A stretch of DNA of 64,000 nucleotides from the NCBI RefSeq assembly GCF_006345805.1, contig NC_043014.1, positions 15,934,001-15,998,000 on the forward strand. The letters run 5' to 3'. This DNA is from Octopus sinensis (Eukaryota). Both the position numbers and the translations under genes were made by a program. Numbering within the stretch: position 1 is the first letter of the stretch; each line of letters opens with the position of its first letter. A model generated the notes under the pieces. That model was not told the origin of the DNA. It worked only from the letters and a program-made list of their open reading frames with translations, and did not search any database. Of this stretch, positions 7,950-64,000 are shown in pieces.

Positions 7950-9300
7950 CAATGGTTTTTAAGTGGTACAAGGCAACAAATTACAGGGAGATAGTTGTAG
8001 TTGATTATATCAATTCTCATTACTTAAACTTTAAACCAATAGAAGTTTATATATATTTCATAAAATCATATTCAATCTTAAGTGTTAGTTACATTAACTA
8101 TAATAAGGTTCTGCTAATTCAGTACCATGGGACTTAGTGCCAGTGAAATGAAACCCAAAAAAGAAAAATTTTATTTTAAAATCAAGTCATTGAATATGTA
8201 ACTAATTTTCAAGTAGCTTCATTATCTGGCAACATCTCTTTTACCAGCCTTTAGTTTACAAATGGCATGTATACAGCTTAGCATTTACAATGACCTAGGA
8301 AGTGATACATTCTTGGATAGTTTTCCACTCAGCACTAATTTTACTTTAACATTGGAAAATACTTTCATGATTGGATGGACAAAAGTAGACGAAGGCGTAA
8401 GTGCTGATCAAATTTCTTTACAGACTGAGTATTAACAATGATGTAATGAGGCCGCATCAGAAAAAAAAAATTGAAATGCAAAAGTATGACAGACTATTGG
8501 TTCTTTACAGTGGATTTTGTCACTGCAATACTCATATGATCAACAAAGAGTGGTTAATATGAGAAAGACTAATTGAATTTAGGTTTTCTTGTATTTCTAA
8601 AGTTTGATTTGTTATGATTAATTTGCAATGAGAAAACCCAGATACTGATTTTTATTACTACACTTAGTGAAAGCAAACATAAAAGAAAAACCCCTAGAAG
8701 TACATTAACTTTTCTATCCATGTTGAGGTGTAGATAAAATACATTGGAAAGTGAAACAGCTTTAGAAGAAACGAGATAAAAGCAATAATGTTACAAGTAA
8801 AACTTTATTCTTCATATATTAAAAAAAATGAAAGACAAGTAAAATATACAGTTAGAAATTTTAAATGTTTCTTTAGAATATTACTTACAAAAATCAATAT
8901 GCCACTGAAGTAAAATATTTATTTAGATAATGTAATTATTAGCTGACATAATGAAAAGGGAATTATTACACATTGCTACAATTACCTGTTATGGAGTATC
9001 ACCTATCCTAAGTAAAAGTCACTAGACAAAAGTATTTAACTGTAGGCTGCACTATGGAAAAGCTGACATAAAATGACAATAATGGAACTATATTTGACTT
9101 ATTGGGCCTATTTTCCATTGAATACTTAAATTTTGAAATTACTTAATATATTACAGTTTTTCATATTTAACAGGCAACTTACAACAAAAGTACAATGCAA
9201 AAAATAGTTTACTTGAAAAAATTACTCGATTTTATTTTTCTTCATTATTTACTTAATAAACTTAATTTAAATCAAACAATGTACCAAATTTATTATTCTA
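7950..9300. other. AT-rich non-repetitive spacer between the TE nest and the repeat locus
   Basis: Very low GC, no ORFs of note. Several minus-strand AATAAA (e.g. near 8804, 9099, 9231, 9289), which are not diagnostic at this composition. Confidence 0.6.
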
Positions 9301-12300
9301 CTTTCAATCTCCATCCATCTACTCTTTGCCAAGATATATGAATCATGGTTACTTGACTCCATCAACCTGTTGTCACCACATCCCATTCACTGATGCTTTT
9401 TGTGCTCTACATTCTTGTTGTTACCACATGCATCAATCACTCTTTACCACAAGTTCTGAGGTACAGTTGCCCCATTTCCATCTTCTTAACATGACACTTC
9501 AGTAAAAATTCTTCTGCTCCATATTCCAACCACAGTCACTCTCTCCCATGTACCAGTTGCCACCACATACCAACCACAATCATTCTCTTCCATGCTCTTC
9601 GGATCACATCCTAGTCACAGTTGTTCTCCAAATCTTCCTGTTGCCATTACATGCTTTGCAGTTGCTCCGTTGTCACTGCTGCTCCATGTTGTCTTGGTCA
9701 CAAAATCTGAAGTCAGTTTTCATATCTCACTTCCTGCTGTCACCATACTTCAGTTGAAGTTAGTTGCTCTATTTGATGTTCCACTCACAGTTGCTACACT
9801 ATCTTGCTGTTGTCACCATATTCTAGTTGCAATTGCTCTTCTGTTTGCTCCTGTTGTAAACACTTCTATGTCACAGCTACTCTTTCCAATGTCCCTGTTG
9901 CCCTGTTCCATGTTCTTGTAGTTTCCATATTCCAGTCATAGTTGCTCTCTCCCATATATCAGTTGTCACCTCATGCCAGTCACAGTTCTTCAAATCTTCT
10001 ATGCTGCTTTGATCACCACATCTTACTAACAGCTGTTCCCCAAATTTTATTGTTGCCACCACATACGTCACAGTTACTTTCTTCCTGCTGTCACCACTCT
10101 AAAGTTACCCTACTTCATGGTCCACATGTCACCACATTCTAGTCAGTTACTATTCTGTCTGTTAATATTGTCAACACATCTTAGAGCTGCTCTTCTCTGG
10201 TTGCCAACACAGTTGCTTTTCTTCATGTTCTAGTATCACCAAATCCAAGTCACACTCACTCAGCTTGATGTTCCTGTTGTCACAGTTGCTCTGCACCACG
10301 TTCCAGCATGTTTCCATATTCCAGTCATAGTTGCTCTCCCTATATACCAATTGCCACAAGTCACAGTTGTCCTGCTCCATGATTCTGCTACCACCAAATC
10401 TTGATTTACACTTCATTTTCTCCATCTTCATGTTTTACCACCTCTCTGTCAGCTGCTTTGCTTCACCTTCCAGCACCTCAACTCAGTTGCTCTCTACCAT
10501 GTTCTAGACTAAGTTGTTCTCTTCCATGCTGGTCCACTCTAATCTTCTTGTTACCACACTTCAGTTTAAGTTGCTCTGCTCCACGTTTTCCTTGTCACAG
10601 TTCTTCTTCAAATCTTCCTGTTGTCACCACATGTCACAGTTGCTCTGCTGCCACCACCTCTATTTTACCAGTTCTGTCATCTTGAGCTCACAAAACCTCA
10701 ATTCAGTTTCTAACTGCCATCTTCCTGCTGCCTCCATTCTCCAGTTAAAGTTGCTCTGTAGGATGTTCTACTCTGTTGCTCTGTAGGATGTTCTACTCAG
10801 TTGCTCTTCTCCATGTTCTTGTTGCCACCATATTCCAGTAAATGTTTATGCTAAGCTCTGCTTTATGTTCCTGCAGTTTCCATATTTCAATCAGAGTTGC
10901 TCTCTTCCATGTACCAGTTGTTACCACATGCCAGGCACAGTTGCTCTGCTTCATCCTCCTGTTATCACCACATTCCAGTTTAGGCGTTCCATTCTATGTC
11001 ACTGCTGCCACCAAATCTCAGTCAGTTGCTCTGCTCCATGTTTATGTTGCCACATCACCTTGATTACACTATTTTCTCCGTCTTCTCATTGCTGCTGCCA
11101 CCTCTAACAGCTGTTCTGCTTCACTTTCCTGCAGTCTCAGCATCTCAACTCACAGCTGCTCCACTCCAATCTTTTTGCTGCCATCGCATACATCGAGGTT
11201 GCTCAATTCCATTATTCTGCTATCACCACATTCTTGTCATAGTTGCTCCATTGCATCTAGCTGTTCTCATCACATTCAGGCCACAGATGTTCTACTCCAT
11301 GTTCCTGTCAGTCACTTTCTCACATGTACAAGTTGTTCTTCAAATCTTCGTCATCATAGATGTTACTGTTGCACTTCTGTCATCACTGTTCTATGTCATA
11401 CTGTGGTCATGACATCGCAATTCTCAGTCAATCACCTCCTTCTTCCTGCTGTCATCACCAGTTCAAGGTGCTCTGCTCCATGTTCCACTCTAACTTCTGC
11501 TCACTTTTTCTCTTCAGTTTATTCCTCTTGCCAACACATCCATCACAGTTGCTCTCCATCTTCCTTTTGACACCAAATCCAAGTCACATTTGCTCTGCTT
11601 TATGTTCCAGTAGCCTCCATATTCCAGTAAAGGTTGCTTTGCACCATGTTCCTGCAGTTTCCATATTTCTAACATTGTTGTTCTGCTCCATGTTTCATGT
11701 TCCCTTGGTCACAGTTTTTTACGTCTCTCTTCCTGCTGTCACTACACTCCAGTTAAAGTTGCTCTGCTTGATGTTCCATTCCATCTTGCTGTTGTCACCA
11801 TATTCTAGTCATAGTTCCTCTTCGGTTTGCTCCTGTTGTGAACACTTCTATGTCATAGCTACTCTTTTCAATGTTCCTGTTGCCATCACAGGTGCCCTGC
11901 TCCATGTTCTTGTAGTTTCCATATTCCAGTCAGTTGCTCTCTCCCATGTACCAGTTGTCACCTCATGCCAGTCAGTCATTCTTCTAATCTTCCTGTTGCC
12001 AATGCATCCATGACAGTAGCATTTTTTTATTTTCCTGTGGTCACCAAATTCAAGTCACATTTTGATTGTTCTGCTCCATGTTTCTGTATTTTCCAGTCAT
12101 AGTCACTCTCTCCCATGTACCAGTTGTTGCAGCTGTTCTCCAAACCTTGTTGCCATCACATACATCACAGTTCCTCTGCTTCATCTTCCTGCAATCTCAG
12201 CACCTCAACCCACACTTGCTATCATCCATCTTCCTATTGTCACATTCCTTTTATTATTGCTCTCTCCCATGATGCTCTGATCACCATATCCCAGTTGCTC

Positions 12301-15300
12301 TGCTCCAATCTTTTTGTTGTTATCACATACATCACAGTTGTTCACTTCCTTCTTTTTGCTGTCACCAATTTCATGTTGAAATTGCTCTGCTCCATTCCAT
12401 CTTGTTTTCATCACATTCAAGTCACAGCTGCTTCTCTGTCCATGTTGTCAACACCTCTATCTCACAGCTGCTCTTCATCTTCCTGATACAAAATCCAAGT
12501 TACACTTGGTTTGCTTCATGTTCCTGCAGTTTTCATATTCCATTCACGGTATAGCTGCTCTCTTCCATGTATTCGTTGTCACCATATACCAGATACAGTG
12601 GCTCTTTTCCATGCTGCCCTGATCACTACATCCTACAGTTGCTCTACTTCAATCTTTCTGTTGCCATCACATACGTCACTGTTGCTGCTGTCAAAACTTC
12701 TATTTCACCACTTTTTATGTCATCTTGTGATCACCCCACTACAATTCAGTTGCTCACTTTCATCTTCCTGCTGTCACCACATTCCAGTCGCAGCCGCTCT
12801 TCTGTTTGTCCCTGATGTCAACACATACATGTCACAGCTGCTCTTCCATGTTCTTGTTGCCAACACATCCATCATAGTTGTTCTTCTTCATCTTCCTGTT
12901 GTCACCAAATCCAAGCCACCATTGCTCTGCTCCATGTTCTCGTTACCACCACATCTTGATTACACCTCATTTTCTGCCATCTTCCTGCACTTTAACTCAT
13001 ACTTGCTCTCTTCCATGCTGTTTTGATGACCATAGCCCACAGTGGCTCTGCTCAAATATTTTTCTTGCCAAACATTCATTTCCATCTTCCTGCTCCCATC
13101 ATACACCAGTTAAAATTGCTCTGCTCCATATTCCACTCATCACCACATTCCCGTCAGAGATGCTGCACTCCATCTTGCTGTTTTTATTACATTCTGGTCA
13201 TAGTTGCTCTTTTGTTTCTTCCTTTTATCAGCACTTCTATGTCACAGCTGCTCCATGTCTGCATATTCCAGTCAGTCTCTACCATATACCAGTCGTCACA
13301 TGTCATTCAGTTACTCTTTAAATCTTCCTGTTGCCATTACAAACGTCATTGTTGCTTAGCTGTCACCACCTCTATGTCAAATTGGTCATGACACCTCAAT
13401 TCACAGTTGCTTTGCTCCCTCCCTCTGCTGTAACTACATTCCAGTTGAAGTTGCTCTGTTCTATGTTCCATTCATCATTTTGCTATTGTCACTACATTCT
13501 AGTCATAGTTGCTCTTCTGTTTGTTCCTGTTGTCAACAACTTTATCTCACAGTTGCCCCTCTGCATATTCCTGCCGTCATCATAACCACCACAGTTGCTC
13601 TGCTCCATGTTTCTCTTTTCAACAAATCCCAGCCATTGCTGCCCTGTTCCATGATGTCGTCATTACCAAATGCAGTTACCCTTTATCATCACCAGTTCTC
13701 AAGTAGAGTTGCACTTGTGTATCTTCATATCACTACATGCCAGTCACAGTTGCTCGTCCATCTTCCTGCTGTCCCTTGCTGCACATTCCTGTTGTTACCA
13801 CACTCCAGTCACTGTTACCCTGCTCCATGTTCCACTCATTTCCACAATTTAATCATAGGTGTTCTACTCCACCTTGCTGTTATCAACACATTCTACTCAC
13901 AGTTGCTCTTCTCAATGTTCTTGTTGCCATCACATGTCACAGTTGTTCTGCTCCACATTCTTGTTGAAACCAATTCTCAGTCAACTTGCTATACTCCATC
14001 TAGTCATCACCACCTGACGGCTGGTCCACTTTATCTTCCTTCTGTAGTATCACCTGAATTCAAAGCTCATCCATATTCCTATTGCCACCACAACCCAGTG
14101 ACATTTGCTTTGCTTCATGCTCCTGTTGTCAATAAATCCTAGTCACTTCTCTGTCAATGCTGTCACAGTTGCTCATTTTATTCTTCCTGTCACCAGACTC
14201 CAGTTGAAGTTGGTCTGCTCTATCTTGCTGTTGCCACCACATTCTGTTACACTTGCTCTTACTTTTGTTTCTACTGTTAAGACCTCTATACCACAGCTGC
14301 CCTTTTTCTGCATCAGTCTTCTTGTCACCAAATTGACTTCACAGCAGCTCTGCTCTATGCTTTGTAGTTTACAGATTCCTGTCATAATTGTTCTGCTCCA
14401 TATTCCTGTTGTCACCACATTCTGGTCATAGTTATCCTGTTCCACTTTGTTGTCATCACCTTCTGGTCGCAGTTGCTTTGCTCCATGTTCTTACTGCCAT
14501 CAAATCCCAGTCACAGTTGCTCTGCTCCTCTTTGATGTTGTCACCAGCTTCTTGTCATCAAAACCCACACCCAGTTGCTCTGCTAGAACTTGTAGTTGTC
14601 ACCACATGCTGCTTGCATTGCTCTGCTTCATGTTCAAGTCATAGTTGCTCTGCTCCATGTTCCTGCTGTCACCAAATCCCAGTCACAGTTGCTCTGCTCA
14701 TCCTCCTCCTTGCTGTTGTCACCACATTCCAATTACAGTTTCTGTGCTCCATGTTCTTGCTATCACCAATACCCCCGTCACAGTTGCTCTGCTCCAACTT
14801 GCTGCTGTCACAGGATTCTGGTTGCAGTTGCTCTGCTTCACACTCTTGTTGCCACCAAGTCTAAGTCATAGTTGCTCTGCTCCACTTTGATGTTGTCACC
14901 AGCTTCTTGTCATCAAAACCCACACACAGTTGCTCTGCTAGAACTTGTAGTTGTCACCACATTCCAGTCACAGTTTCTGTGCTCCATGTTCATGCTGTTA
15001 CCAAATCCCAGTCACAGTTGTTCTGCTCCACTTTGTTGTTATCACCATCTTCTGGTCACAGTTGCTTTGCTTCTTGTTCCTGCTGTTATCAAAACCCACA
15101 CAGTTGCTCTGCCCCAACTTGCTGTTGTCACCACATTCTGGTTGCAGTTGCTCTGCTCTACTTTTTTGGTGTCACCATATTCTGGTCACAGTTGTTTTGC
15201 TTCTTGTTCCTGCTGTCACAGAATCTAAGTCATAGTTGCTCTGCTTCATGCTCCTGCTGTTATCAAAACCCACACATAGTTGCTCTGCCCCAACTTGCTG

Positions 15301-18300
15301 TTGTCACCATATTCTGGTTGCAGTAGCTCTGCTCCACTTTTTTGGTGGCACCATATTCTGGTCACAGTTGTTTTGCTTCTTGTTCCTGCTGTCACAGAAT
15401 CTAAGTCATAGTTGCTCTGCTTCATGTTTCTGCTGTTATCAAAACCCACACAGTTGCTCTGCCCCAACTTGCTGTTGTCACCACATTCTGGTTGCAGTTG
15501 CTCTGCTCTACTTTTTTGGTGTCACCATATTCTGGTCACAGTTGTTTTGCTTCTTGTTCCTGCTGTCACAGAATCTAAGTCATAGTTGCTCTGCTTCATG
15601 TTCCTGCTGTTATCAAAACCCACACATAGTTGCTCTGCCCCAACTTGCTGTTGTCACCACATTCTGGTTGCAGTTGCTCTGCTCTACTTTTTTGGTGTCA
15701 CCATATTCTGGTCACAGTTGTTTTGCTTGCTGTTGTCACCATATTCTGGTTGCAGTAGCTCTGCTCCACTTTTTTGGTGCCACCATATTCTGGTCACAGT
15801 TGTTTTGCTTCTTGTTCCTGCTGTCACAGAATCTAAGTCATAGTTGCTCTGCTTCATGCTCCTGCTGTTATCAAAACCCACACGTAGTTGCTCTGCCCCA
15901 ACTTGCTGTTGTCACCATATTCTGGTTGCAGTAGCTCTGCTCCACTTTTTTGGTGTCACCATATTCTGGTCACAGTTGTTTTGCTTCTTGTTCCTGCTGT
16001 CACAGAATCTAAGTCATAGTTGCTCTGCTTCATGTTCCTGCTATTATCAAAACCCACACATAGTTGCTCTGCCCCAACTTGCTGTTGTCACCATATTCTG
16101 GTTGCAGTAGCTCTGCTCCACTTTTTTGGTGTCACCATATTCTGGTCACAGTTGCTCTGCTTCATGTTCCTGCTGTCACCAAATCTAAGTAAAAGTAGCT
16201 CTGCTCCGTGTTCCTGCTGTCATCAAATCCCAGTCACAGTTGTCCTGTTCCATCTTGCTGTTGTTACAGCATTCCAGTCACAGTTGCTCTGCTTCACACT
16301 CCTATTGCCACCAAGTCTAAGTCATAGTTTCTCTGCTCCACTTTGATGTTGTCACCAGCTTCTTGTCATCAAAACCCACACACAGTTGCTCTGCTAGAAC
16401 TTGTAGTTGTCACCCACATTCCAGTTATAGTTTCTGTGCTCCATGTTCATGCTGTTACCAAATCCCAGTCACAGTTGTTCTGCTCCACTTTGTTGTTGTC
16501 ACCATCTTCTGGTCACAGTTGCTTGGCTTCTTGTTCCTGCTGTCACAGAATCTAAGTCATAGTTGCTCTGCTTCATGTTCCTGCTGTTATCAAAACCCAC
16601 ACAGTTTCTCTGCCCCAACTTGCTGTTGTCACCACATTCTAGTTGCAGTTGCTCTGCTCTACTTTTTTGGTGTCACCATATTCTGGTCACAGTTGTTTTG
16701 CTTGCTGTTGTCACCATATTCTGGTTGCAGTAGCTCTGCTCCACCTTTTTGGTGTCACCATATTCTGGTCACAGTTGTTTTGCTTCTTGTTCCTGCTGTC
16801 ACAGAATCTAAGTCATAGTTGCTCTGCTTCATGTTCCTGCTGTTATCAAAACCCACACATAGTTGCTCTGCTCCAACTTGCTGTTGTCACCATATTCTGG
16901 TTGCAGTAGCTCTGCTCCACTTTTTTGGTGTCACCATATTCTGGTCACAGTTGCTCTGCTTCATGTTCCTGCTGTCACCAAATCTAAGTAAAACTAGCTC
17001 TGCTCCGTGTTCCTGCTGTCATCAAATCCCAGTCACAGTTGTCCTGTTCCATCTTGCTGTTGTTACAGCATTCCAGTCACAGTCGCTCTGCTTCACACTC
17101 CTATTGCCACCAAGTCTAAGTCATAGTTTCTCTGCTCCACTTTGATGTTGTCACCAGCTTCTTGTCATCAAAACCCACACACAGTTGCTCTGCTAGAACT
17201 TGTAGTTGTCACCCACATTCCAGTTATAGTTTCTGTGCTCCATGTTCATGCTGTTACCAAATCCCAGTCACAGTTGTTCTGCTCCACTTTGTTGTTGTCA
17301 CCATCTTCTGGTCACAGTTGCTTGGCTTCTTGTTCCTGCTGTTATCAAAACCCACACAGTTGCTCTGCCCCAACTTGCTGTTGTCACCACTTTTTTGGTG
17401 CCACCATATTCTGGTCACAGTTGTTTTGCTTCTTGTTCCTGCTGTCACAGAATCTAAGTCATAGTTGCTCTGCTTCATGTTCCTGCTGTTATCAAAACCC
17501 ACACATAGTTGCTCTGCCCCAACTTGCTGTTGTCACCACATTCTGGTTGCACTTGCTCTGCTCTACTTTTTTGGTGTCACCATATTCTGGTCACAGTTGT
17601 TTTGCTTGCTGTCGTCACCATATTCTGGTTGCAGTAGCTCTGCTCCACTTTTTTGGTGTCACCATATTCTGGTCACAGTTGTTTTGCTTCTTGTTCCTGC
17701 TGTCACAGAATCTAAGTCATAGTTGCTCTGCTTCTTGTTCCTGCTGTTATCAAAACCCACACATAGTTGCTCTGCCCCAACTTGCTGTTGTCACCATATT
17801 CTGTTTGCAGTAGCTCTGCTCCACTTTTTTCGTGTCACCATATTCTGGTCACAGTTGCTCTGCTTCATGTTCCTGCAGTCATCAAATCCCAGTCACAGTT
17901 GTCCTGTTCCATCTTGCTATTGTTACAGCATTCCAGTCACAGTTGCTCTGCTTCACACTCCTATTGCCACCAAGTCTAAGTCAAAGTTTCTCTGCTCCAC
18001 TTTGATGTTGTCACCAGCTTCTTGTCATCAAACCCCACACAAAGTTGCTCTGCTAGAACTTGTAGTTGTCACCACATGCTGCTTGCAGTTGCTCTGCTTC
18101 ATGTTGAAGTCATAGCTGCTCTGCTCCATGTTCCTGCTGTCACCAAATCTCAGTCATAGTTGCCCTGTTCCACCTTGCTGTTGTTACCACATTCCAGTCA
18201 CTGTTACTCTGCTTCATGTTCTTGTTGCCACCAAGTCTAAGCTATAGTTGCTCTGCTCCATGTTTCTGCTGTCAGCAAATCCCAGACAGTTGCTCTGCTC

Positions 18301-25800: not shown

Positions 25801-26413
25801 TATACAATACAATAACCACCTGGTACCAGATACAGTCACTGAATAGGAACTTTTGTATCTGTAATAAAAAACATCTAAAAACAAATCTCACTTCTTTCAA
25901 TCTCCCAAGCCAGTTTCCATTTCATGGTCATCACATTTGCAATCAACTTTCATCAGATGTCCAACCACTGCTGTCAGATCATCAGTTTCTATTAACTGTC
26001 CTGCCAGTTGCCACCAACTCTATACCAGATGACCTACCATAACTGTTACTAGTTTCCATTGCACTTATGGACAGACACATTAGATATCAAAGAGCCTAAA
26101 AATGAAGCAAAACAAACCACTTCATATCTCCCAGCTCAGCAGTCAGTCAACAACTGTGGATGTCTAAAGACAGAGTCATCATAACTTTGGTAATAATCAT
26201 CGGTTGCAACAAGCTTTCATTAAATGTTCCATCACACAGTTGTTATCAGTTAATAGTCAATGATAAATGTCATCCTCAGCAAGAAGAGAAAATACATAAA
26301 AAGAGCCTGCTAATCTCCAGATGTTCAATCACATTTCTCATCAGTCACCAGATGTTCCATCATGGCCACCATCAAGTCAAGAGATGTTCCATCAGTTGCC
26401 ACTATCAGTCACG

Positions 26414-26704
26414 AGATGTTCCATCACTGCCACCATCAGTGTCCAGATGTTCCACCACTGCCACCATCAGTGTCCAGATGTTCCACCACTGCCACCATCA
26501 GTGTCCAGATGTTCCACCACTGCCACCATCAGTGTCCAGATGTTCCACCACTGCCACCATCAGTGTCCAGATGTTCCACCACTGCCACCATCAGTGTCCA
26601 GATGTTCCACCACTGCCACCATCAGTGTCCAGATGTTCCACCACTGCCACCATCAGTGTCCAGATGTTCCATCACTGCCACCATCAGTGTCCAGATGTTC
26701 CATC
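26414..26704. repeat. 31-bp tandem array (CAGATGTTCCACCACTGCCACCATCAGTGTC), ~9 near-identical copies
   Basis: Directly visible. Confidence 0.95.
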
Positions 26705-26989
26705 AGTTGCCACCAGTCTCCTGATGCACCATCACAGTTGCCATATGTTTCATCACTATTGCATTCAGTCTCCAGATGCTGCATTGCAGTTGCCAGCCTC
26801 TAGATGCTCAATCATTGTTGGTGCCAGTCTCCAGATACACTACCAGTCTCTAGATGTACCATCACACATCACCAGTTGGTTGTCAATTATAGATGTCATC
26901 CTTATCTGCAAAAGAAAATATCTGAAAGCAAGACTCACCAGTTTCCATTAGATGTTTCAATGCTGTTGCCATCAGTCCCTAGATGAACC

Positions 26990-28135: not shown

Positions 28136-28592
28136 AGTTGCTACTAGTTTCCTTTAGATATAAAAAAGCCTGAAAATGAAGCAAAATGAGCCTTGTCTTT
28201 CTTCTGAAGTGACCAGTCCTTTGGATGTTTACAACAGGTTAAATTTGTACCATTCTATCACAATTGCCAACAGTTTTCTTTAGATGTCCTGTCACACATT
28301 TTACCAATTTCCAGTCAATGTTCAGTCCACCAGAAGCAGTTTCCATTGTATATTCCATCAGAAAATCATCAAGGAGATTCTACCAAATAGTTATCACCAA
28401 CTTCTCAGGAATGTTCCATCACACAGGTGTCACCAGTCAATTGTAGATGTCATCCTCATCTGCAAATGAAGAACCTGAAAGAAAGACTTGCTAGTTCTCA
28501 TTAGATGTTCCATCACAGCTGCCACCAGTTTCCAGATGTTCCTTCACAACTTTCATTTAGCATTCCGGGGATGCCACCAGCTTCCATTGGAT

Positions 28593-50800: not shown

Positions 50801-53800
50801 ATCACAAGTTGGTTGTCAATTGTAGATGTGATCCTTATCTGCAACAGAAAATATCTCAAAAGCAAAACTCACCTCTTTTTTCAATCTAAGTAATTGGTGA
50901 TGAGGCAGTCTCTTCGATACATGAAGCTGTTCCAGAAGTCCAGATCATTTTGCCTCATGGTAGTCACCTCTAAGCTATGCAGTGATTCCTTTCTAAGCAG
51001 TTCTAGGCATTCAGACCTGTCACCAGAATCCATTAGTTGCTCTGCCAGCCGATACCAGTCTGTCATATGCTCCATCTCTGTTGCATCCAGTGTCCATCAG
51101 ATGGTTTGTCACCATTTCCATTACTTGTTCCACTACAACTTCCGATATCTATTAGACGCTCCACCACAAATCCCATTGGTAATCTTATGTTCCATCAATT
51201 TGCATATGCTCGATCACAGCAGCCATCACTCTTCTTCACAGATACCACCAGCTTCTTGTCTGATTCATTAGGTATTGAAAAGCCTGAAAATGAAGTAAAA
51301 TGAGCTACCTCTTTCCTCCTAAGTTATTGGTCCTTTCAAAATTTGATGTCATCTTGATTTGCAAACGAAAATACTTGAAAAGAGAAAGTTCAGTCTCCAG
51401 ATATTACATCACGGTTGGTACCCATCTCTAGACATTACATCATGGTTGCCACCAGTCTCCATAAGGTTCTATTACAATTGCCACCAGTGCCCATCAGATG
51501 ATTCTATTACAGTTGCCACCAGTCACTATCATATGCTCCATCAGTTGCTACCAGTCACCATTGGATGCTCCATCTGTTGCTACCAGTCACCATGAGATGC
51601 TCCATCTGTTGCTACCAGTCACCATGAGATGCTCCATCTGTTGCTACCAGTCACCATCAGATGCTCCATCTGTTGCTACCAGTCACCATCAGATGCTCCA
51701 TCTGTTGCTACCAGTCACCATCAGATGCTCCATCTGTTGCTACCAGTCACCATCAGATGTTCCATCACAGTTGCTCCCTATCTCCATCAAATGTTCAAAA
51801 GATGCATCCAGTTTGTCTCACCAATTACGTAAACAAAATAGCATGAACATGAAAGTAAGCGAACCACTTCTTGCCACCAAACTCATCAGTTCTGGTTGTA
51901 ATCTGGACTTGCATTCCATCAAAATTACTAACAGCCTTTTCTACCAATTTCCAGTAAATAAATATTCTATTAGCCGGTACCATCTTCTACTGTATTATCC
52001 ATCAGACTATTTTCTTCATGAAGATTCCATCTGAGTCACCACCAATGTCACAAATCTTCCATCATACAGCTGTCTCCAGTTAGTTGTCAATTACAGAAGT
52101 CATCCTTTTCTGCAAAAAAAAACCTCAGAAAAGAAAAACTCACCTCATCATTCAGCCTCACAAATCAGCAATGATGAACCATAGTCTCTGCAATATACAA
52201 AGTTGCCTCAGACGCTCGAATCATCGGCCATCAAGTTTCATTGTAAGCATCATTGAGGCACATGGAGTTTCTCTTGTGTTACCATCACTCGTCAACTGTC
52301 AAATACTGGACAAAGGCGAATAGGCCTGAAATTCAAACAAAATATACCTCCACTTCTACCATTAGCTTGGCAACATCACTATTTGTAAATTCCATTACAG
52401 CTGTCACTAAATGTTCCATAGCTTCTTCCATTTTCCGTTAGACGTTCTATCGCAGCTACCAAAGATTCCAGAAGAATGTTCCGTCACAGTGACCACAAGT
52501 GTACATTGGATGCTCCACCAGATACCAGTCTCCAGATGCTACATCATGGTTGCCACCAGTCTCCAGACATTACATCATGGTTGCTGACAGTTTCCATCAG
52601 ACTATTCTATTGCAGTTGCCACCAGTCTATCAAATGTTCCATCACAGAAGCCACCAGTCACCATCAGATGTTCTATCACAGATGCCACCAGTCACCATCA
52701 GATGTTCCATCACAGATGCCACCAGTCATCCTCAGATGTTCCAAAGTTGCCACCAGTCACCATCAGATGTTCCATTACATTCTATCAAAATTCTCTTCAT
52801 GAAGATTCAACCTAAGAGTCACCACCGATATCACAAATCTTCTATCAAACTGCTGTCTCCAATTAGTTGTCAATTACAGATGTTATCCTTTTCTGCAAAA
52901 AACCTCAGAAAAGAAAAACTCACCTCATTCAGCCTCACAAATCAACAATGATGAGCCATAGTCTCGACAATACACAAAGTTGCTTCAGACACTCAAATCA
53001 TCATCCACCATCAAATTTCACTGTAAACATCGTTGAGGTACCAGGAGTTTCTGTTTCTTCCATTTTCCGTTAGACATTCTATCACAGCTACCAAAGATTC
53101 CAGTAGATGTTCCGTCACAGTTGCATGCTCCACCAGATACTAGTCCCCATTAGAAGTTATGAAGTTGTCACAAGTTTCTTGTTTGATGTATCAGATATAC
53201 CAAAAAGCCTGAAAATAAAGCAAACAAAACACTTCTTTCCTCCAAAGTCGCCGATCAACATTTGCTAATGTCCAAACACATGTGCACAGTAACTACGATA
53301 ATAATTAGTTGAATTCTATCAAATATTTCGTCCAAAAGTTGCAACGAGTTGGTTATTAACTACAGATGTCATCCACATCTAGAGAAAAAAATACTCAAAG
53401 AAAAGCTCACCTCTTCTTTCAATCTCACTAATTGGTGATGATGAGCCAGTCTCTTCGATACATGAAGCTGTTTCATTATGTCTTAAAGCAGACACCACTA
53501 AGCTATGCAATGATTCTTTTCTAAGCAGCGCTTATTAGGAATTCAGACCTGTCACCATTTCCATTAGTAGTTCTGCCACATTTGTCACCAGTGTGTCATA
53601 TGTTCCATCACAGTCGCATCCAGTCAGACAGTAATCATTTCCATTAATTGTTCCACTACAATTGCCAATATCTATTAGAAGCTCCTCCACAGATGCCATT
53701 GGTAATGTGATGTTCCATCAGTTGCCATCAATTTGCAGATGCTCCATCACTCTTCTTCACAGATACCACCAGCTTCTTGTCTGATTCATTAGGTATTGAA

Positions 53801-56800
53801 AAGCCTGAAAATGAAGTAAAATGACCGACCTCTCTCTTTCCAAGTTATTGGTCCTGTCAACACTTGATGTCATCCTCATTTGCAAACGAAAATACTTGAA
53901 AAAAGAAAGTGATCAGTTTCCAGATGTTACATCACGGTTGGTACCCATCTCTAGACATTACATCATGGTTGCCACCAGTCTCCATAAGATTCTATTACAA
54001 TTGCCACCAGTGTCCATCAGATGATTCTATTACAGTTGCCACCAGTCACTATCACATGTTCATCTGTTGCTACCAGTCACCATCAGCTGCTCCAGCTTTT
54101 GCTACCAGTCACCATCAGATGCTCCACCTGTTGCTACTAGTCACCATCAGATGCTCCATCTGTTGCTACCAGTCACCATCGGTTGCTCCATCTGTTGCTA
54201 CCAGTCACCATCAGTTGCTCCATCTGTTGCTACCGCTCACCATCAGATGCTCCATCAGTTGCTACCAGTATTATCTCGAACTCCATGAAAATTGCTAACA
54301 GCCTTTTCTACCAATTTCCAGTAAACAAATGTTCTATTAGTAGGCACCATCTTCTACTGTATTATCCTTCAGACTATTTTCTTCATGAAGATTCAACCAA
54401 AGAGTCATCACCAATGTCACAAATCTTTTATCATAGAGCTGTCTCCAGTTAGTTGTCAATTATAGATGTCATCATTTTCTGCAAAAGAAAACCTCAGAGA
54501 AGAAAAACTCACCTCATCATTCAGCTTCACAAATCAGCATAGTCACTGCAATATACAAAGTTGCCTCAGACACTCAAATCATCATCAGTCGTCAAGTTTC
54601 TTTGCAAGCATCATTGAGGTACTTGGAGTTTCTCTTGTGTTACCACCAGTCACCAACCGTCAAATACTGGACAAATGAGAATAGGCCTGAAATTCAAGCA
54701 AAATCTACCTCCACTTCTATCATGAGCTTGGGATCATCACTATTTGCATGTTCCATAACAGCTGTCACTAGATGTTCAACAGCTTCTACCATTTTCTTTT
54801 AGATGGTCTATCGCAGCTACCAAAGAACCCAGTAGATGTTCTGTCAGTTGTTACAAGTGTCCATTAGATGCTCCACCAGATACCAGTCTCCATTAGAAGT
54901 TATGAAGTCGTCGCAAATCTCTTGTTTGATGTATTAAATACCAAAAAGGCTAGATATAAAGCAAAACAAACCACTTCTTTCCTCAAAAGTTGCCCAACAT
55001 TTGCAGATGTCCAAACGCATGTTCACAGTAGCTACCATAATAATCATCAGTTGAATTCCATCGCAAATATTCCATCCAAGGTTGTCACCAGTTGGCTGTC
55101 AATTGCAGATGTCATCCACATCTACAGAGAAAAAAAATACACAAAGAAAAACTCACCCCTTCTTTCAGCCTCACGATTCAACAATGATGAGCCACATTCT
55201 CTTCAACATATAAAGCTGTCTCGAAGTTCACAAATCATCATGCTTCACATTGTCCTATCAAAGTTGCCAGTCTCCATCAGATGTGCTAAAGTTGCAATCC
55301 ATCTCCAAATGTTCAAGACTTGCCATCAGTCTCCAAATGTTCAGTCAACAACTCTCCAGATGATCCACCATAGTTGCCATTTCTTCCTTGTCCAACTTAT
55401 TAAAGATGAAAATGTCTGAAAACAAAGCAAAAGAAACCACTTCTTTCCTCCAAATTTACCAGTCTTGTTGACATTTGTAGATGATCAAGTCAGGGCAGTA
55501 ATAACTTTGGTAAGAATTAGTTGCATTCCATCACAAGTGCAAACAGATTCCATTAGATATTCTACTGGTCCACACTAGCTTCCTCCAATTCATCATGAAT
55601 CTTCTATCACATAGTTATCACAAGTTGGTTGTCAATTGTAGATGTGATCCTTATCTGCAACAGAAAATATATCAAAAGCAAATCTCACTCTCTTCTTTCA
55701 ACCTAATTGGTGATGAGCAAGTCTCTTCGATACATGAAGCTGTTCCAGAAGTCCAGATCTTATGTCTCACAGTAGTCACCTCTAAGCTATGCAGTTATTC
55801 TTTTCTAAGCAGCTCTAATTAGGTATGCAAACCTGTCACCAGAATCCATTAGTTGCTCTGCCAGTTGATACCAGTCTGTCATATGCTCCATCTCTGTTGC
55901 ATCCAGTGTCCATCAGATGGTTTGTCACCATTTCCATTACTTGTTCCACTACAACTTCCGATATCTATTAGACGCTCCACCACAAATCCCATTGGTAATC
56001 TTATGTTCCATCAATTTGCATATGCTCGATCACAGCAGCCATCACTCTTCTTCACAGATACCACCAGCTTCTTGTCTGATTCATTAGGTATTGAAAAGCC
56101 TGAAAATGAAGTAAAATGAGCTACCTCTTTCCTCCTAAGTTATTGGTCCTTTCAAAATTTGATGTCATCTTGATTTGCAAACGAAAATACTTGAAAAAAG
56201 AAATTGATCAGTTTCCAGATGTTACATCACTCACGGTTGGTACCCATCTCTAGACATTACATCATGGTTGCCACCAGCCTCCATACAATTGCCACCAGTG
56301 CCCATCAGATGATTCTATTAGTTGCCACCAGTCACTATCATATGCTCCATCAGTTGCTACCAGTCACCATCAGCTGCTCCATCTGTTGCTACCAGTCACC
56401 ATCAGATGCTCCATCTGTTGCTACCAGTCACCATCAGATGTTCCATCACAGTTGCTCCCCATCTCCATCAAATGTTCAAAAGATGCATCCAGTTGTCTCA
56501 ACAATTACTAAACAAAATAGCATGAACATGAAAGTAAGCGAACCACTTCTTGCCACCAAACTCATCAGCTCTGGTTGTAATCTGGACTTGCATTCCATCA
56601 AAATTGCTAACAGCCTTTTCTACCAATTTCCAGTTAATAAATATTCTATTAGCATGTACCATCTTCTATTGTATTATCCATCAGACTATTTTCTTCATGA
56701 AGATTCCATCGGAGTCACCACCAATGTCACAAATCTTCCATCACACAGCTGTCTCCAGTTAGTTGTCAATTACAGATGTTATCCTTTTCTGCAAAAGAAA

Positions 56801-59800
56801 ACCTCAGAAAAGAAAAACTCACCTCATTCAGCCTCACAAATCAGCAATGATGAGCCATAGTCTCGACAATACACAAAGTTGCTTCAGACACTCAAATAAT
56901 CATCCACCATCAAATTTCACTGTAAGCATCGTTGAGGTACTTGGGAGTTTCTCTTGTGTTACCATCACTCATCAACCGTCAAATACTGGACAAATGAAAA
57001 TAGGCCTGAAATTCAAGCAAAATGTACCTCCACTTCTATCATGAGCTTGGCAATATCACCGTTTGCACATTCCATTACAGCTGTCACTAATGTTCCACGA
57101 TTTTCTGTTAGACATTCTATCGCAGCTTCCAAAGATTCCAGTAGATGTTCTGTCAGTTGTTACAAGTGTCCATTAGATGCTCCACCAGATACCAGTCTCC
57201 ATTAGAAGTTATGAAGTCGTCGCAAATCTCTTGTTTGATGTATTAGATACCAAAAAGGCTAGATATAAAGCAAAACAAACCACTTCTTTCCTCCAAAGTT
57301 GCCCAACATTTGCAGATGTCCAAACGCATGTCCACAGTAGCTACCATAATAATCATCAGTTGAATTCCATCGCAAATATTCCATCCAAAGTTGTCACCAG
57401 TTGGCTGTCAATTACAGATGTCATCCACATCTACAGAGAAAAAAAATACACTAAGAAAAACTCACCCCTTCTTTCAGCCTCACGATTCAACAATGATGAG
57501 CCACATTCTCTTCAACATATAAAGCTATCTCAAAGTTCACAAATCATCATGCTTCACAATGTCCTATCAAAGTTGCCAGTCTCCATCAGATGTGCTAAAG
57601 TTGCCATCCATCTCCAAATGTTCAAGACTTGCTATCAGTCTCCAAATGTTCAATCAGTCAACACCACTCTCCAGATGAAACACCATAGTTGCCATTTCTT
57701 CCTTGTCCAACTTATTAAATATGAAAATGTCTGAAAACAAAACAAAAGAAACCACTTCTTTCTTCCTAATTTACCAGTCTTGTTGACATTTGTAGATGAT
57801 CAAGTCAGGGCAGTAATAACTTTGGTAAGAATTAGTTGCATTCCATTAGATATTCTACTGGTCCACACTAGCTTCCTCCAATTCATCATGGATCTTCTAT
57901 CACATAGTTATCACAAGTTGGTTGTCAATTGTAGATGTGATCCTTATCTGCAACAGAAAATATCTCAAAAGCAAATCTCACCTCTTCTTTCAATCTAATT
58001 GGTGATGAGCAAGTCTCTTCGATACATGAAGCTGTTCCAGAAGTCCAGATCTTTATGTCTCACAGTAGTCACCTCTAAGCTATGCAGTTATTCTTTTCTA
58101 AGCAGCTCTAATTATGTATGCAAACCTGTCACCAGAATCCATTAGTTGCTCTGCCAGTTGATACCAGTCTGTCATATGCTCCATCTCTGTTGTATCCAGT
58201 GTCCGTCAGATGGTTTGTCACCATTTCCATTAATTGTTCCACTACAACTTCCGATATCTATTAGACGCTCCTCCACTGATGCCATTGGTAATCTGATGTT
58301 CCATCACAGTTGCCATCAATTTGCAGATGCTCCATCACTCTTCTTCACAGATACCACCAGCTTCTTGTCTGATTCATTAGGTATTGAAAAGCCTGAAAAT
58401 GAAGGAAAATAAGCGACCTCTTTCCTCCTAAGTTATTGGTCCTTTCAAAATTTGATGTCATCCTCATTTGCAAACAAAAATACTTGAAAAAAGAAAGTGA
58501 TCAGTTTCCAGATGTTACATCACGGTTGGTACCCATCTCTAGACATTACATCATGGTGGCCACCAGTCTCCATAAGATTCTATTACAATTGCCACCAGTG
58601 CCCATCAGATGATTCTATTAGTTGCCACCAGTCACTATCATATGCTCCATCAGTTGCTACCAGTCACCATCAGCTGCTCCATCAGTTGCTACCAGTCACC
58701 ATCAGATGCTCCATCTGTTGCTACCAGTCACCATCAGATGTTCCATCACAGTTGCTCCCCATCTCCATCAAATGTTCAAAAGATGCATCCAGTTTGTCTC
58801 ACCAATTACGTAAACAAAATAGCATGAACATGAAAGTAAGCGAACCACTTCTTGCCACCAAACTCATCAGCTCTGGTTGTAATCTGGACTTGCATTCCAT
58901 CAAAATTGCTAACAGCCTTTTCTACCAATTTCCAGTTAATAAATATTCTATTAGCATGTACCATCTTCTATTGTATTATCCATCAGACTATTTTCTTCAT
59001 GAAGATTCCATCGGAGTCACCACCAATGTCACAAATCTTCCATCATACAGCTGTCTCCAGTTAGTTGTCAATTACAGTTGTTATCCTTTTCTGCAAAAGA
59101 AAACCTCAGAAAAGAAAAACTCACCTCATTCAGCCTCACAAATCAGCAATGATGAGCCATAGTTTCGACAATACACAAAGTTGCTTCAGACACTCAAATC
59201 ATCATCCACCATCAAATTTCACTGTAAGCATCGTTGAGGTACTTGGGAGTTTCTCTTGTGTTACCATCACTCATCAACCGTCAAATACTGGACAAATGAA
59301 AATAGGCCTGAAATTCAAGCAAAATGTACCTCCACTTCTATCATGAGCTTGGCAATATCACCGTTTGCACAATCCATTACAGCTGTCACTAATGTTCCAC
59401 GATTTTCTGTTAGACATTCTATCGCAGCTTCCAAAGATTCCAGTAGATGTTCCGTCAGTTGCCACAAGTTTCCATTGGATGCTCCACCAGATACCAGTCT
59501 TCACCTAGAAGTTATGAAGTCGTCGCAAGTCTCTTGTTTGATGTATTAGATACCAAAAAGCCTAGGAATGAAGCAAAACAAACCACTTCTTTCCTCCAAA
59601 GTTGCCAGTCAACATTTGCAGATGTTCAAACGCATGTTCACAGTAGCTACCATAATAATCATCAGTTGAATTCCATCGCAAATATTCCATCCAAAGTTGT
59701 CACCAGTTGGCTGACAATTGCAGATGTCATCCACATCTACAGAGAAAAAAAATACACAAGAAAAAACTCACCCCTTCTTTCAGCCTCACGATTCAACAAT

Positions 59801-62800
59801 GATGAGCCACATTCTCTTCAACATATAAAGCTGTCTCGAAGTTCACAAATCATCATGCTTCACATTGTCCTATCAAAGTTGCCAGTCTCCATCAGATGTG
59901 CTAAAGTTGCCAACAGCCTCCAGATGTTTCACGACTTGCCATCAGTCCCCAAATGTTCAATCAGTCGACACTACTCTCCAGATGAAACACCATAGTTGCC
60001 ACTAGTCCCTTGTCCAACTACTTAAATATGAAAATGTCTGAAAACAAAGCAAAAGAAACCACTTCTTTCCTCCAAATTTACCAGTCTTGTTGACATTTGT
60101 AGATGATCAAGTCAGGGCAGTAATAACTTTGGTAAGAATTAGTTGCATTCCATCACAAGTGCAAAGAGATTCCATTAGATATTCTACTGGTCCACACTAG
60201 CTTCCTCCAATTCATCATGAATCTTCTATCACATAGTTATCACAAGTTGGTTGTCAATTGTAGATGTGATCCTTATCTGCAACAGAAAATATCTCAAAAG
60301 CAAATCTCACCTCTTCTTTCAATCTAATTGGTGATGAGCAAGTCTCTTCGATACATGAAGCTGTTCCAGAAGTCCAGATCTTTATGTCTCACAGTAGTCA
60401 CCTCTAAGCTATGCAGTTATTCTTTTCTAAGCAGCTCTAATTAGGTATGCAAACCTGTCACCAGAATCCATTAGTTGCTCTGCCAGTTGATACCAGTCTG
60501 TCATATGCTCCATCTCTGTTGCATCCAGTGTCCATCAGATGGTTTGTCACCATTTCCATTACTTGTTCCACTACAACTTCCGATATCTATATAGACGCTC
60601 CACCACAAATCCCATTGGTAATCTTATGTTCCATCAATTTGCATATGCTCGATCACAGCAGTCATCACTCTTCTTCACAGATACCACCAGCTTCTTGTCT
60701 GATTCATTAGGTATTGAAAAGCCTGAAAATGAAGTAAAATGAGCTACCTCTCCTCTTTCCTCCTAAGTTATTGGTCCTTTCAAAATTTGATGTCATCTTG
60801 ATTTGCAAACGAAAATACTTGAAAAAAGAAATTTATCAGTTTCCAGATGTTACATCACGGTTGGTACCCATCTCTAGACATCACATCATGGTTGCCACCA
60901 GCCTCCATACAATTGCCACCAGTGCCCATCAGATGATTCTATAGTTGCCACCAGTCACTATCATATGCTCCATCAGTTGCTACCAGTCACCATCAGATGC
61001 TCCATCTGTTGCTACCAGTCACCATTGGATGCTCCATCTGTTGCTACCAGTCACCATGAGATGCTCCATCTGTTGCTACCAGTCACCATGAGATGCTCCA
61101 TCTGTTGCTACCAGTCACCATCAGCTGCTCCATCTGTTGCTACCAGTCACCATCAGATGCTCCATCTGTTGCTACCAGTCACCATCAGATGTTCCATCAC
61201 AGTTGCTCCCCATCTCCATCAAATGTTCAAAAGATGCATCCAGTTTGTCTCACCAATTACGTAAACAAAATAGCATGAACATGAAAGTAAGCGAACCACT
61301 TCTTGCCACCAAACTCATCAGCTCTGGTTGTAATCTGGACTTGCATTCCATCAAAATTGCTAACAGCCTTCTCTACCAATTTCCACAGTTAATAAATATT
61401 CTATTAGCATGTACCATCTTCTATTGTATTATCCATCAGACTATTTTCTTCATGAAGATTCCATCGGAGTCACCACCATGTCACAATCTTCCATCATACA
61501 GCTGTCTCCAGTTAGTTGTCAATTACAGATGTTATCCTTTTCTGCAAAAGAAAACCTCAGAAAAGAAAAACTCACCTCATTCAGCCTCACAAATCAGCAA
61601 TGATGAGCCATAGTCTCGACAATACACAAAGTTGCTTCAGACACTCAAATCATCATCCACCATCAAATTTCACTGTAAACATCGTTGAGGTACTTGGGAG
61701 TTTCTCTTGTGTTACCATCACTCATCAACCGTCAAATACTGGACAAATGAAAATAGGCCTGAAATTCAAGCAAAATGTACCTCCACTTCTATCATGAGCT
61801 TGGCAATATCACCGTTTGCACATTCCATTACAGCTGTCACTAATGTTCCACGATTTTCTGTTAGACATTCTATCTATCGCAGCTTCCAAAGATTCCAGTA
61901 GATGTTCTGTCAGTTGTTACAAGTGTCCATTAGATGGCTCCACCAGATACCAGTCTCCATTAGAAGTTATGAAGTCGTCGCAAATCTCTTGTTTGATGTA
62001 TTAGATACCAAAAAGGCTAGATATAAAGCAAAACAAACCACTTCTTTCCTCCAAAGTTGCCCAACATTTGCAGATGTCCAAACGCATGTCCACAGTAGCT
62101 ACCATAATAATCATCAGTTGAATTCCATCGCAAATATTCCATCCAAGGTTGTCACCAGTTGGCTGTCAATTGCAGATGTCATCCACATCTACAGAGAAAA
62201 AAATACACAAAGAAAAACTCACCCCTTCTTTCAGCCTCACGATTCAACAATGATGAGCCACATTCTCTTCAACATATAAAGCTATCTCAAAGTTCACAAA
62301 TCATCATGCTTCACAATGTCCTATCAAAGTTGCCAGTCTCCATCAGATGTGCTAAAGTTGCCATCCATCTCCAAATGTTCAAGACTTGCTATCAGTCTCC
62401 AAATGTTCAATCAGTCAACACCACTCTCCAGATGAAACACCATAGTTGCCATTTCTTCCTTGTCCAACTTATTAAATATGAAAATGTCTGAAAACAAAAC
62501 AAAAGAAACCACTTCTTTCTTCCTAATTTACCAAGTCTTGTTGACATTTGTAGATGATCAAGTCAGGGCAGTAATAACTTTGGTAAGAATTAGTTGCATT
62601 CCATTAGATATTCTACTGGTCCACACTAGCTTCCTCCAATTCATCATGGATCTTCTATCACATAGTTATCACAAGTTGGTTGTCAATTGTAGATGTGATC
62701 CTTATCTGCAACAGAAAATATCTCAAAAGCAAATCTCACCTCTTCTTTCAATCTAATTGGTGATGAGCAAGTCTCTTCGATACATGAAGCTGTTCCAGAA

Positions 62801-64000
62801 GTCCAGATCTTTATGTCTCACAGTAGTCACCTCTAAGCTATGCAGTTATTCTTTTCTAAGCAGCTCTAATTAGGTATGCAAACCTGTCACCAGAATCCAT
62901 TAGTTGCTCTGCCAGTTGATACCAGTCTGTCATATGCTCCATCTCTGTTGTATCCAGTGTCCATCAGATGGTTTGTCACCATTTCCATTAATTGTTCCAC
63001 TACAACTTCCGATATCTATTAGACGCTCCTCCACTGATGCCATTGGTAATCTGATGTTCCATCACAGTTGCCATCAATTTGCAGATGCTCCATCACTCTT
63101 CTTCACAGATACCACCAGCTTCTTGTCTGATTCATTAGGTATTGAAAAGCCTGAAAATGAAGGAAAATAAGCGACCTCTTTCCTCCTAAGTTATTGGTCC
63201 TTTCAAAATTTGATGTCATCCTCATTTGCAAACGAAAATACTTGAAAAAAGAAAGTGATCAGTTTCCAGATGTTACATCACGGTTGGTACCCATCTCTAG
63301 ACATTACATCATGGTGGCCACCAGTCTCCATAAGATTCTATTACAATTGCCACCAGTGCCCATCAGATGATTCTATTAGTTGCCACCAGTCACTATCATA
63401 TGCTCCATCAGTTGCTACCAGTCACATCAGATGCTCCATCAGTTGCTACCAGTCACCATCAGCTGCTACATCTGTTGCTACCAGTCACCATCAGATGCTC
63501 CATCTGTTGCTACCATTCACCAGTCACCATCAGATGTTCCATCACAGTTGCTCCCCATCTCCATCAATTGTTCAAAAGATGCATCCAGTTTGTCTCACCA
63601 ATCTACGTAAACAAAATAGCATGAACACGAAAGTAAGCAAACCACTTCTTGCCACCAAACTCATCAGTTCTGGTTGTAATCCGGACTTGCATTCCATCAA
63701 AATTGCTAACAGCCTTCTCTACCAATTTCCAGTTAATAATATTCTATTAGCATGTACCATCTTCTATTGTATTATCCATCAGACTATTTTCGTCATGAAG
63801 ATTCCATCGGAGTCACCACCAATGTCACAAATCTTCCATCATACAGCTGTCTCCAGTTAGTTGTCAATTACAGTTGTTATCCTTTTCTGCAAAAGAAAAC
63901 CTCAGAAAAGAAAAACTCACTCATCATTCAGCCTCACAAATCAGCAATTGAGCCATAGTTTCGACAATACACAAAGTTGCTTCAGACACTCAAATCATCA
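44850..64000. repeat. Higher-order repeat of 2.2-2.5 kb units (8 units), with 4.75-kb and 6,994-bp super-periods
   Basis: The anchor ttttCTGCAAAAgaaaacctcag occurs at 44955, 47485, 49658, 52110, 54479, 56789, 59091, 61542, 63887. Pairs 45899/52893 and 47485/54479 are both 6994 apart. Pairs 56789/61542 and 58146/62904 are ~4755 apart. Confidence 0.9.
51535..51770. repeat. 32-bp tandem array (CAGATGCTCCATCTGTTGCTACCAGTCACCAT); copy-number-variable paralogs near 47065, 49170, 54060, 56345, 58640, 60965, 63405
   Basis: Directly visible; period 32 (51629, 51661, 51693). Confidence 0.92.

Follow-up and report, generated by a model that had tools for sequence, protein, structure and literature searches.

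We describe here a 64,000-nucleotide stretch of the Octopus sinensis genome (assembly GCA_006345805.1, CM016876.1:15,934,001-15,998,000; hereafter the window, in which position 1 is the first base), containing a nest of tandem repeats that runs in one direction for more than 54 kb, from 9.3 kb to the window end. The locus consists of head-to-tail copies with higher-order periodicity and no inverted copies, as macrosatellites and minisatellites are defined, and it has no protein-coding capacity. We judge that there is an even chance that it is a lineage-specific, non-protein-coding macrosatellite with nested minisatellites. We infer its amplification history from the pattern of identity among the repeats, and the absence of a sequence-specific function likewise. 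If a single oriented founder unit gave rise to the whole locus, without any later inversion, then its uniform orientation, its excess of C over G, its shared motifs, its poverty in CpG and its one-way splice signals all follow. The gene-like features would then represent one observation rather than sixty, and neither transcription nor selection would be needed to account for them.

The single orientation of the repeats, which had been claimed in a first-pass annotation of the window, is borne out both by motif counts and by self-comparison. For CAGTTGC the counts on the plus and minus strands are 177 and 0, for GTCACC 226 and 2, for CCACCAG 142 and 2, and for CATCAGATG 80 and 2; none of 1838 self-BLAST matches is inverted, and BLAST of the sequence in chunks also yields no inverted match. 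The same annotation had described the plus strand as C-rich and G-poor, and the GC skew indeed lies between -0.23 and -0.42 in all 2-kb bins from 10 to 64 kb except that at 28-30 kb. In 300-bp windows the skew rises above -0.05 only at 28,401-30,000, the site of an inserted long interspersed nuclear element (LINE), and elsewhere C exceeds G. Its guess that the DNA came from a coleoid cephalopod was correct, and the distinct repeat domains with shared motifs that it reported correspond to families with periods of 44, 31, 34 and 32 bp, all on one strand.

The ratio of observed to expected CpG is 0.04-0.34 over positions 10,001-64,000, and 0.35-0.74 in the LINE, the left flank and a retrotransposon to the left of the locus. 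The repeat consensus units and the founder unit contain no CpG, so the CpG poverty is uninformative and may have been inherited from the founder instead of signalling methylation. This bears on the possibility, which we hold to be distinctly unlikely, that the locus is a passive part of a larger transcription unit, either the long intron or 3' untranslated region of a gene outside the window or a functionless read-through or by-product. Very low CpG is compatible with the methylation of gene bodies, but a CpG-free founder would produce it equally. The array does run off the right end of the window, with the last cassette copy (see below) at 63,822-63,979, but the only gene called within 10 kb on either side of the LINE is the open reading frame (ORF) of the LINE itself, and a 54-kb intron containing a single transposon would be unusual.

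Array periods were determined with Tandem Repeats Finder (TRF) and larger duplications by self-BLAST, and core motifs were mapped with mismatches allowed. At its left end the locus begins with a 44-bp minisatellite block (9300-19,700) of about 236 units, all in one orientation and about 65% alike on average, whose plus strand is rich in C and T. At 14.6-19.0 kb TRF reports 44-bp arrays together with higher-order periods of 88, 174, 176 and 434 bp, and younger higher-order repeats occupy 14.9-18.0 kb. The 44-bp core is confined to 10.2-21.7 kb (110 plus-strand and no minus-strand occurrences), while the core of the 31/34-bp arrays spans 20.8-63.3 kb (155 and 0) and that of the 32-bp arrays 23-63.5 kb (65 and 0). 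A junction segment of about 1.3 kb (19,701-21,000) lies between the 44-bp block and the unit array; it keeps the excess of C over G, and has neither a paralogue elsewhere in the locus nor a recognisable feature.

To the right of the junction is an older array (21,028-44,900, minus strand) of approximately 32 head-to-tail copies of a unit of 0.3-0.65 kb, each with a splice-like cassette that in several copies has decayed. The copies at 21-38 kb are strongly diverged, matching the consensus in 0.66 of cells. TRF identifies 31-bp expansions within the older array at 26,339-26,715, 26,981-28,140, 37,144-37,281 and 44,354-44,854, and 34-bp expansions at 32,594-34,416 and 35,377-35,994. The younger part (44,900-64,000, minus strand) is built of higher-order modules of about 2.3 kb, each composed of four diverged sub-units (A-D), and continues past the window. 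Six full 2.3-kb modules are 93-99% identical to one another, larger duplications at offsets of 4.75 and 6.95 kb are 96-98% identical, and identity among the repeats rises towards the right end of the window. Each module contains one 32-bp array detected by TRF (47,041-47,275, 49,124-49,315, 51,512-51,766, 54,035-54,269, 56,279-56,448, 58,589-58,748, 60,913-61,198 and 63,347-63,522). Inside the module array a 207-bp segment is tandemly duplicated with 99% identity at 45,234-45,647, a very recent local duplication.

Every unit carries on its minus strand a purine run followed by GGTGAGT, a polypyrimidine tract and CAG, adjoining a box of about 31 nt. Used as a profile, this cassette matches 63 copies from 21.0 to 64.0 kb; every one lies on the minus strand, and neither the 44-bp block nor the 9-kb left flank contains any. 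Thirty-six non-redundant copies have the minus-strand consensus ...TGAGACTGAAAGAAGAG/GTGAGTTTTTCTTTTCAGATATTTTCTTTTGCAG/ATGAGGATGACATCTGTAATTGACAACCAACTGGTGACAACTGTTTGATGGAACATTTG..., and a splice consensus with donor, polypyrimidine tract and acceptor (GAG/GTGAGT...TTTTCTTTTGCAG/AT) is thus complete on one strand. In an example block of about 165 nt (56,724-56,881, minus strand), the consensus reads ...TGAGACTGAAAGAAGAG/GTGAGTTTTTCTTTTCAGATATTTTCTTTTGCAG/ATGAGGATGACATCTGTAATTGACAACCAACTGGTGACAACTG...; the interval from GT to AG measures 34 nt in this copy, corresponding to plus-strand positions 56,789-56,822, and the box ACTGGTGACAACTGTGATGGAACATCT comes after that interval. The 21-mer GAAAGAAGAGGTGAGTTTTTC is found 28 times when up to three mismatches are allowed, always on the minus strand, with none expected by chance. 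A second, weaker element of purine run and U-tract, similar to the cassette, is present in each sub-unit of about 0.6 kb, suggesting an older period of about 0.3 kb.

The cassette also ties the minisatellites to the larger unit. The repeating unit of the 31/34-bp arrays is the box of about 31 nt that follows the cassette (ACTGGTGACAACTGTGATGGAACATCT), so these arrays arose where part of the unit expanded locally. Two sequences, GGTGACAAC and AACTGTGAC, are common to this box and the 44-bp unit. We propose that a founder unit of about 0.3-0.6 kb, carrying one cassette resembling an exon/intron junction (purine run, GGTGAGT, U-rich tract and CAG) and the neighbouring box of about 31 nt, would have multiplied into head-to-tail copies through unequal exchange and replication slippage. 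The copies at 21-44 kb would be the older ones, which have drifted apart, and a four-unit module of 2.3 kb would have been re-amplified recently at 45-64 kb and beyond. The box presumably expanded locally on several occasions into the 31-, 32- and 34-bp arrays, and a related 44-bp variant may have expanded into the 10-kb block at 9.3-19.7 kb.

The unit could instead derive from a transposon, for example a non-autonomous element with internal tandem repeats that was amplified in tandem and has copies dispersed elsewhere in the genome. Satellites associated with Helitron/Helentron elements and with miniature inverted-repeat transposable elements are known in molluscs, octopus genomes are rich in short interspersed nuclear elements and LINEs, and the unit's size of 0.3-0.65 kb, its A-rich plus-strand tract and the minisatellite seed within it are typical of such elements. 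But the units abut head to tail with no target-site duplications between them, the locus has neither terminal inverted repeats nor any inverted match, and the 9-kb left flank contains no copy. Moreover, only one predicted protein in public proteomes resembles a module, so the module is not widely annotated elsewhere. We accordingly give little credence to a transposon origin.

Splice-site signals in the locus are as one-sided as the first-pass annotation had claimed, the strongest of them pointing along the minus strand. Position weight matrices applied to 20-64 kb identify, on the minus strand, 42 donors scoring 8 bits or more and 27 acceptors scoring 12 bits or more, compared to 4 and 4 on the plus strand. 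The 44-bp block, which had been described as free of splice cassettes, contains none by the cassette profile and almost none in the matrix scan. This pattern is what would be expected of a functional, repeat-built long noncoding RNA (lncRNA) transcribed from the minus strand, starting beyond 64 kb, with the block of 44-nt repeats as its terminal exon and polyadenylation at about 9.3-8 kb. With its U-tracts and its strong 5' splice-site motifs, numbering more than 60, such an RNA would bind the U1 small nuclear ribonucleoprotein and polypyrimidine-binding proteins and thereby be tethered to chromatin or retained in a nuclear body, and the repeats of 31-44 nt would serve as multivalent protein-binding platforms. 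We give this alternative a small but appreciable chance of being correct.

The splice-like sites themselves speak less clearly for such an RNA than their number suggests. Because they were copied by descent from one founder site they are not independent evidence, and this applies to all of the signals. The interval from GT to AG is only 27-36 nt, which is below the usual minimum of animal introns and probably too short to be removed as a metazoan intron, and it is possible that cassette donors are spliced to more distant acceptors. Agreement with the consensus, taken over 22 non-redundant copies spanning the cassette, is 0.81 of cells at splice-critical bases and 0.70 in neighbouring columns, but this excess is weak and is not a clean test of constraint because the copies are related. 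In the older copies both GT and AG are kept in only four of ten, and the splice-like sites there decay at a near-neutral rate.

RNA structure prediction for both strands of four repeat types gave no fold better than those of shuffled sequences (z from -1.5 to +2.4), the short arrays folding worse than their shuffles (z up to +2.4). This result cuts both ways: an unstructured RNA is expected of a protein-binding platform, as in a minus-strand lncRNA, and the lack of a significant fold is equally in keeping with a macrosatellite. A search of Rfam 15 at gathering thresholds detected no family within the locus, which counts against it, and the sole match in the window is a fragment of 18S ribosomal RNA (rRNA) outside the repeats.

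The first-pass annotation had further pointed to an AT-rich tail with AATAAA signals at 8-9.3 kb, and this too is present. The flank at 8000-9299 has a GC content of 0.32 and directly abuts the repeat block, with minus-strand hexamers at 9289, 9231, 8918, 8804, 8651 and 8170. Only with transcription of the minus strand would it qualify as a candidate 3' end, and AATAAA is only about two to three times as frequent in it as expected by chance for DNA of this composition.

The plus strand of the locus contains ORFs of up to 381 codons, and all three of its frames are open through the arrays. Between 9.3 and 20 kb the longest open frame is 260 codons, compared to a mean of 276 in dinucleotide-preserving shuffles; between 46 and 64 kb it is 224 codons, compared to a shuffle maximum of 220, and the long ORFs there are repeated copies of the same module ORFs. 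Since the shuffled sequences have equally long frames, the long plus-strand ORFs are an effect of composition. On the minus strand, which is closed, no open frame in the modules exceeds 71 codons, and all three minus-strand frames of the unit consensus are interrupted by stop codons within 50 nt to either side of the cassette. None of the array periods (31, 32, 34 and 44 bp) is a multiple of three, only 10 of 116 indels between the six modules are multiples of three, and variable sites in these modules are distributed evenly over codon positions (72, 71 and 75). Some 1-bp indels may be errors, as the assembly is based on PacBio continuous long reads, but the periodicities and the consensus stops are independent of these. 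Such an assembly may also contain collapsed or mis-polished repeats. No Pfam family was found for the ORFs of either strand, and an exact look-up of ten plus-strand ORFs in a public gene collection showed none to be a called gene.

We also considered whether the minus strand contains the decayed exons of a Cys-rich protein (LDLa- or EGF-like), an idea prompted by the recurring strings 'NCDGTSDGDW' and 'ICDG'. It is ruled out by the consensus stops in all three frames, by the absence of a Pfam family for the minus-strand ORFs and by array periods that are not multiples of three.

A search of 5.8 billion proteins with a plus-strand module ORF returned a single match, a 177-residue 'uncharacterized protein' of Octopus bimaculoides (P0001; UniProt A0A0L8FND8) that is 42% identical over 67% of the query, with both the array part and the unique part of the module aligning. 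The module family thus exists in O. bimaculoides, which separated from O. sinensis 13-34 million years ago. An ORF of the B-type module, searched with HMMER against 1.84 billion representative proteins, found only P0014, an unrelated repeat artefact, and the protein search with an ORF of the 44-bp block gave no match. A scan of metagenomes with a conserved 18-mer yielded 102 single chance matches, none of which fits the cassette profile.

Together with the long ORFs and the three open frames, the O. bimaculoides protein is the argument for a plus-strand gene encoding a His/Cys/Ser/Pro-rich repeat protein. This proposal is close to refuted: the ORF lengths are those of the dinucleotide shuffles, the indels and array periods do not respect the reading frame, there is no codon-position bias, no Pfam family and no called gene, plus-strand donors are almost absent, and there is no other homologue among the 1.84 billion representative proteins. 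A0A0L8FND8 is probably a spurious ORF, an artefact on the stop-poor, C-rich strand of a homologous repeat. The noncoding nature of the locus and its relative in O. bimaculoides both fit a minus-strand lncRNA, but the gene predicted in O. bimaculoides occupies the C-rich strand, opposite to the proposed RNA.

The only foreign insert in the 54-kb locus is a 5'-truncated LINE (28,577-29,990, plus strand), which retains the C-terminal part of its reverse transcriptase ORF, with 356 codons open. It is flanked by a 7-bp target-site duplication (ATTGGAT), has AATAAA at its 3' end and stands outside the repeat family. Its ORF has relatives (P0003-P0013) that are 46-53% identical, including a protein of Argonauta hians. 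One of these (P0006) is labelled as belonging to a metagenome-assembled genome of 'Herbaspirillum sp.', and the presence of a eukaryotic LINE ORF there suggests that this bacterial bin is contaminated.

A locus this poor in transposons would suit a functional lncRNA, but it argues against a one-strand source of small RNAs of the PIWI-interacting (piRNA) type, since transposon sequence is the material of which such clusters are made and there is almost none here. The strict single direction over more than 54 kb is what such a source locus would show, and we nevertheless consider this origin very improbable.

Several observations weigh against a macrosatellite that lacks sequence-specific function. 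First, the younger copies have kept their cassettes, with GT in 12 of 12 non-redundant copies, AG in 11 of 12 and both in 11 of 12, and their splice-critical bases match the consensus in 0.89 of cells compared to 0.73 in the flanks; this retention, and the position of splice-critical bases somewhat above their flanks, is also what a functional minus-strand lncRNA would predict. Second, a purine run, a strong donor and a U-tract together make an optimal context for binding U1. Third, the repeat block has a sharp boundary with an AT-rich, AATAAA-containing stretch, as would be expected at the 3' end of such an RNA. Fourth, the diverged half at 21-44 kb is still tandem and uninverted with one transposon insertion, and about two-thirds of its aligned positions match the unit consensus; this integrity hints at selection or at a protected chromatin state. 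Fifth, a related module persists in O. bimaculoides and is annotated there as a gene. Finally, substitutions are unevenly distributed along the 2.3-kb module (chi-square p = 2e-5 in six related copies; 56,817-59,118), a pattern that could reflect either constraint or tracts of gene conversion.

Along the module, substitutions are sparse at 58.5-59.1 kb, in the sub-unit with the 32-bp array, and dense around 57.0 and 58.3 kb. A conservation profile of the whole unit by pairwise BLAST was uninformative, as minisatellite units cross-align everywhere.

If these observations do reflect function, the RNA might be a giant nuclear transcript of more than 54 kb from the minus strand, whose more than 60 U1-type sites, U-tracts and 10-kb 3' block would act as a multivalent trap or scaffold for splicing factors and heterogeneous nuclear ribonucleoproteins, a role that we suggest by analogy and regard as unlikely. 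The octopus has long sex-specific lncRNAs, Zmast and Zfest, whose existence favours a functional lncRNA in general. Both are linked to the Z chromosome, which in O. sinensis is linkage group 20 (LG20); their loci measure 18 kb and 13.8 kb, a coding-potential tool classes them as noncoding or weakly noncoding, and the O. sinensis copies are represented by several separate LOC entries (bioRxiv 10.1101/2024.12.09.627507).

The present locus is probably not on the Z chromosome. The literature yielded no assignment of CM016876.1 to a linkage group, and the position can be approached through accession numbers. CM016889.1 belongs to Aspergillus fumigatus SGAir0713 rather than to octopus, so CM016876.1 should be LG18 or later, provided that the 30 octopus accessions run consecutively in linkage-group order, and LG26-30 if the eight fungal chromosomes occupy CM016881-88. 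The length of CM016876.1 (55.35 Mb) would point the other way, to around LG18-20, were the linkage groups numbered by size, but we gave this no weight because numbering by size is only an assumption. By the accession arithmetic, which is not a look-up, Z-linkage is improbable, and this counts against a functional lncRNA. Should CM016876.1 turn out to be the Z (LG20), a giant RNA of the kind just described could be a sex-linked regulatory RNA near the Zmast region, a still smaller possibility.

As a macrosatellite, the locus resembles the human DXZ4 and D4Z4 arrays, whose definition the 2.3-kb modules at 45-64 kb fit, and Firre with its 156-bp RRD units: all have strict head-to-tail units on the kilobase scale, higher-order structure, repeated short modules that could provide multivalent binding sites, and no coding function. 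There is no sequence relation to any of them, and transcription, binding of CTCF or hnRNP-U and X-linkage are documented features of those loci. In the octopus locus, unlike in these, several minisatellite families are also nested, and the 44-bp repeats form a 10-kb block of their own. With Xist, Rsx and roX it shares several internal domains of tandem repeats with units of tens of nucleotides, a single orientation and the lack of coding capacity. But it has no Rfam match and no stable hairpin like that of Xist repeat A, it is probably not Z-linked, and repeats make up nearly all of it, whereas in Xist, Rsx and roX they are islands within unique sequence. Because that class is defined by its transcripts, the octopus locus, with an RNA that is hypothetical, cannot be filed in it.

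A further comparison is with Drosophila hsr-omega (93D), human PNCTR and the satellite III RNAs, which are tandem-repeat nuclear RNAs that sequester RNA-binding proteins; the predicted octopus RNA, if transcribed, would likewise be a long unstructured array of short protein-binding motifs (5' splice-site-like motifs, U-rich tracts and 31-44-nt repeats), a resemblance of design only. Zmast and Zfest come from the same genus and are also long loci classed as noncoding or weakly noncoding, but they lie on LG20, whereas CM016876.1 is placed later by accession arithmetic, and no tandem-repeat architecture is mentioned for them (bioRxiv 10.1101/2024.12.09.627507).

The left flank of the window contains several unrelated features. 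A degenerate Ty3/Gypsy-type long terminal repeat (LTR) retrotransposon lies at about 229-4903 on the minus strand, with gag at 4053-4559, reverse transcriptase at 2428-3078 and integrase at 1230-1688, its ORFs split by frameshifts; its LTR remnants (229-354 and 4778-4903) are 126 nt long and 93% identical. Next to it is a compound (CATA)n/(CA)n microsatellite of about 200 bp (4947-5214), which is flanked by a 71-nt inverted repeat (4886-4956 and 5408-5478, 83% complementary). At 5619-5862 on the plus strand there is a 244-nt match to positions 1225-1478 of eukaryotic 18S rRNA (105.6 bits, E = 1.9e-27). Standing alone in non-ribosomal DNA between the retrotransposon and the repeat locus, it is a ribosomal DNA fragment or an rRNA-derived insertion.

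Even if the locus is only a macrosatellite, it illustrates how one oriented founder can yield a 54-kb mimic of a gene, complete with strand skew, one-way splice sites and long ORFs, and it provides a warning for annotation, as A0A0L8FND8 is probably an artefact of such a repeat. If it is transcribed, its minus-strand RNA would contain more than 60 U1-type 5' splice-site motifs, each followed by a polypyrimidine tract, on an unstructured backbone. Reports of sex-specific lncRNAs and of dosage compensation in cephalopods are very recent, and such a transcript would be the first repeat-built architectural RNA described in this group, a counterpart of hsr-omega, Firre or PNCTR, and would make the multivalency of U1 and polypyrimidine motifs open to testing in an animal other than a fly or a mammal.

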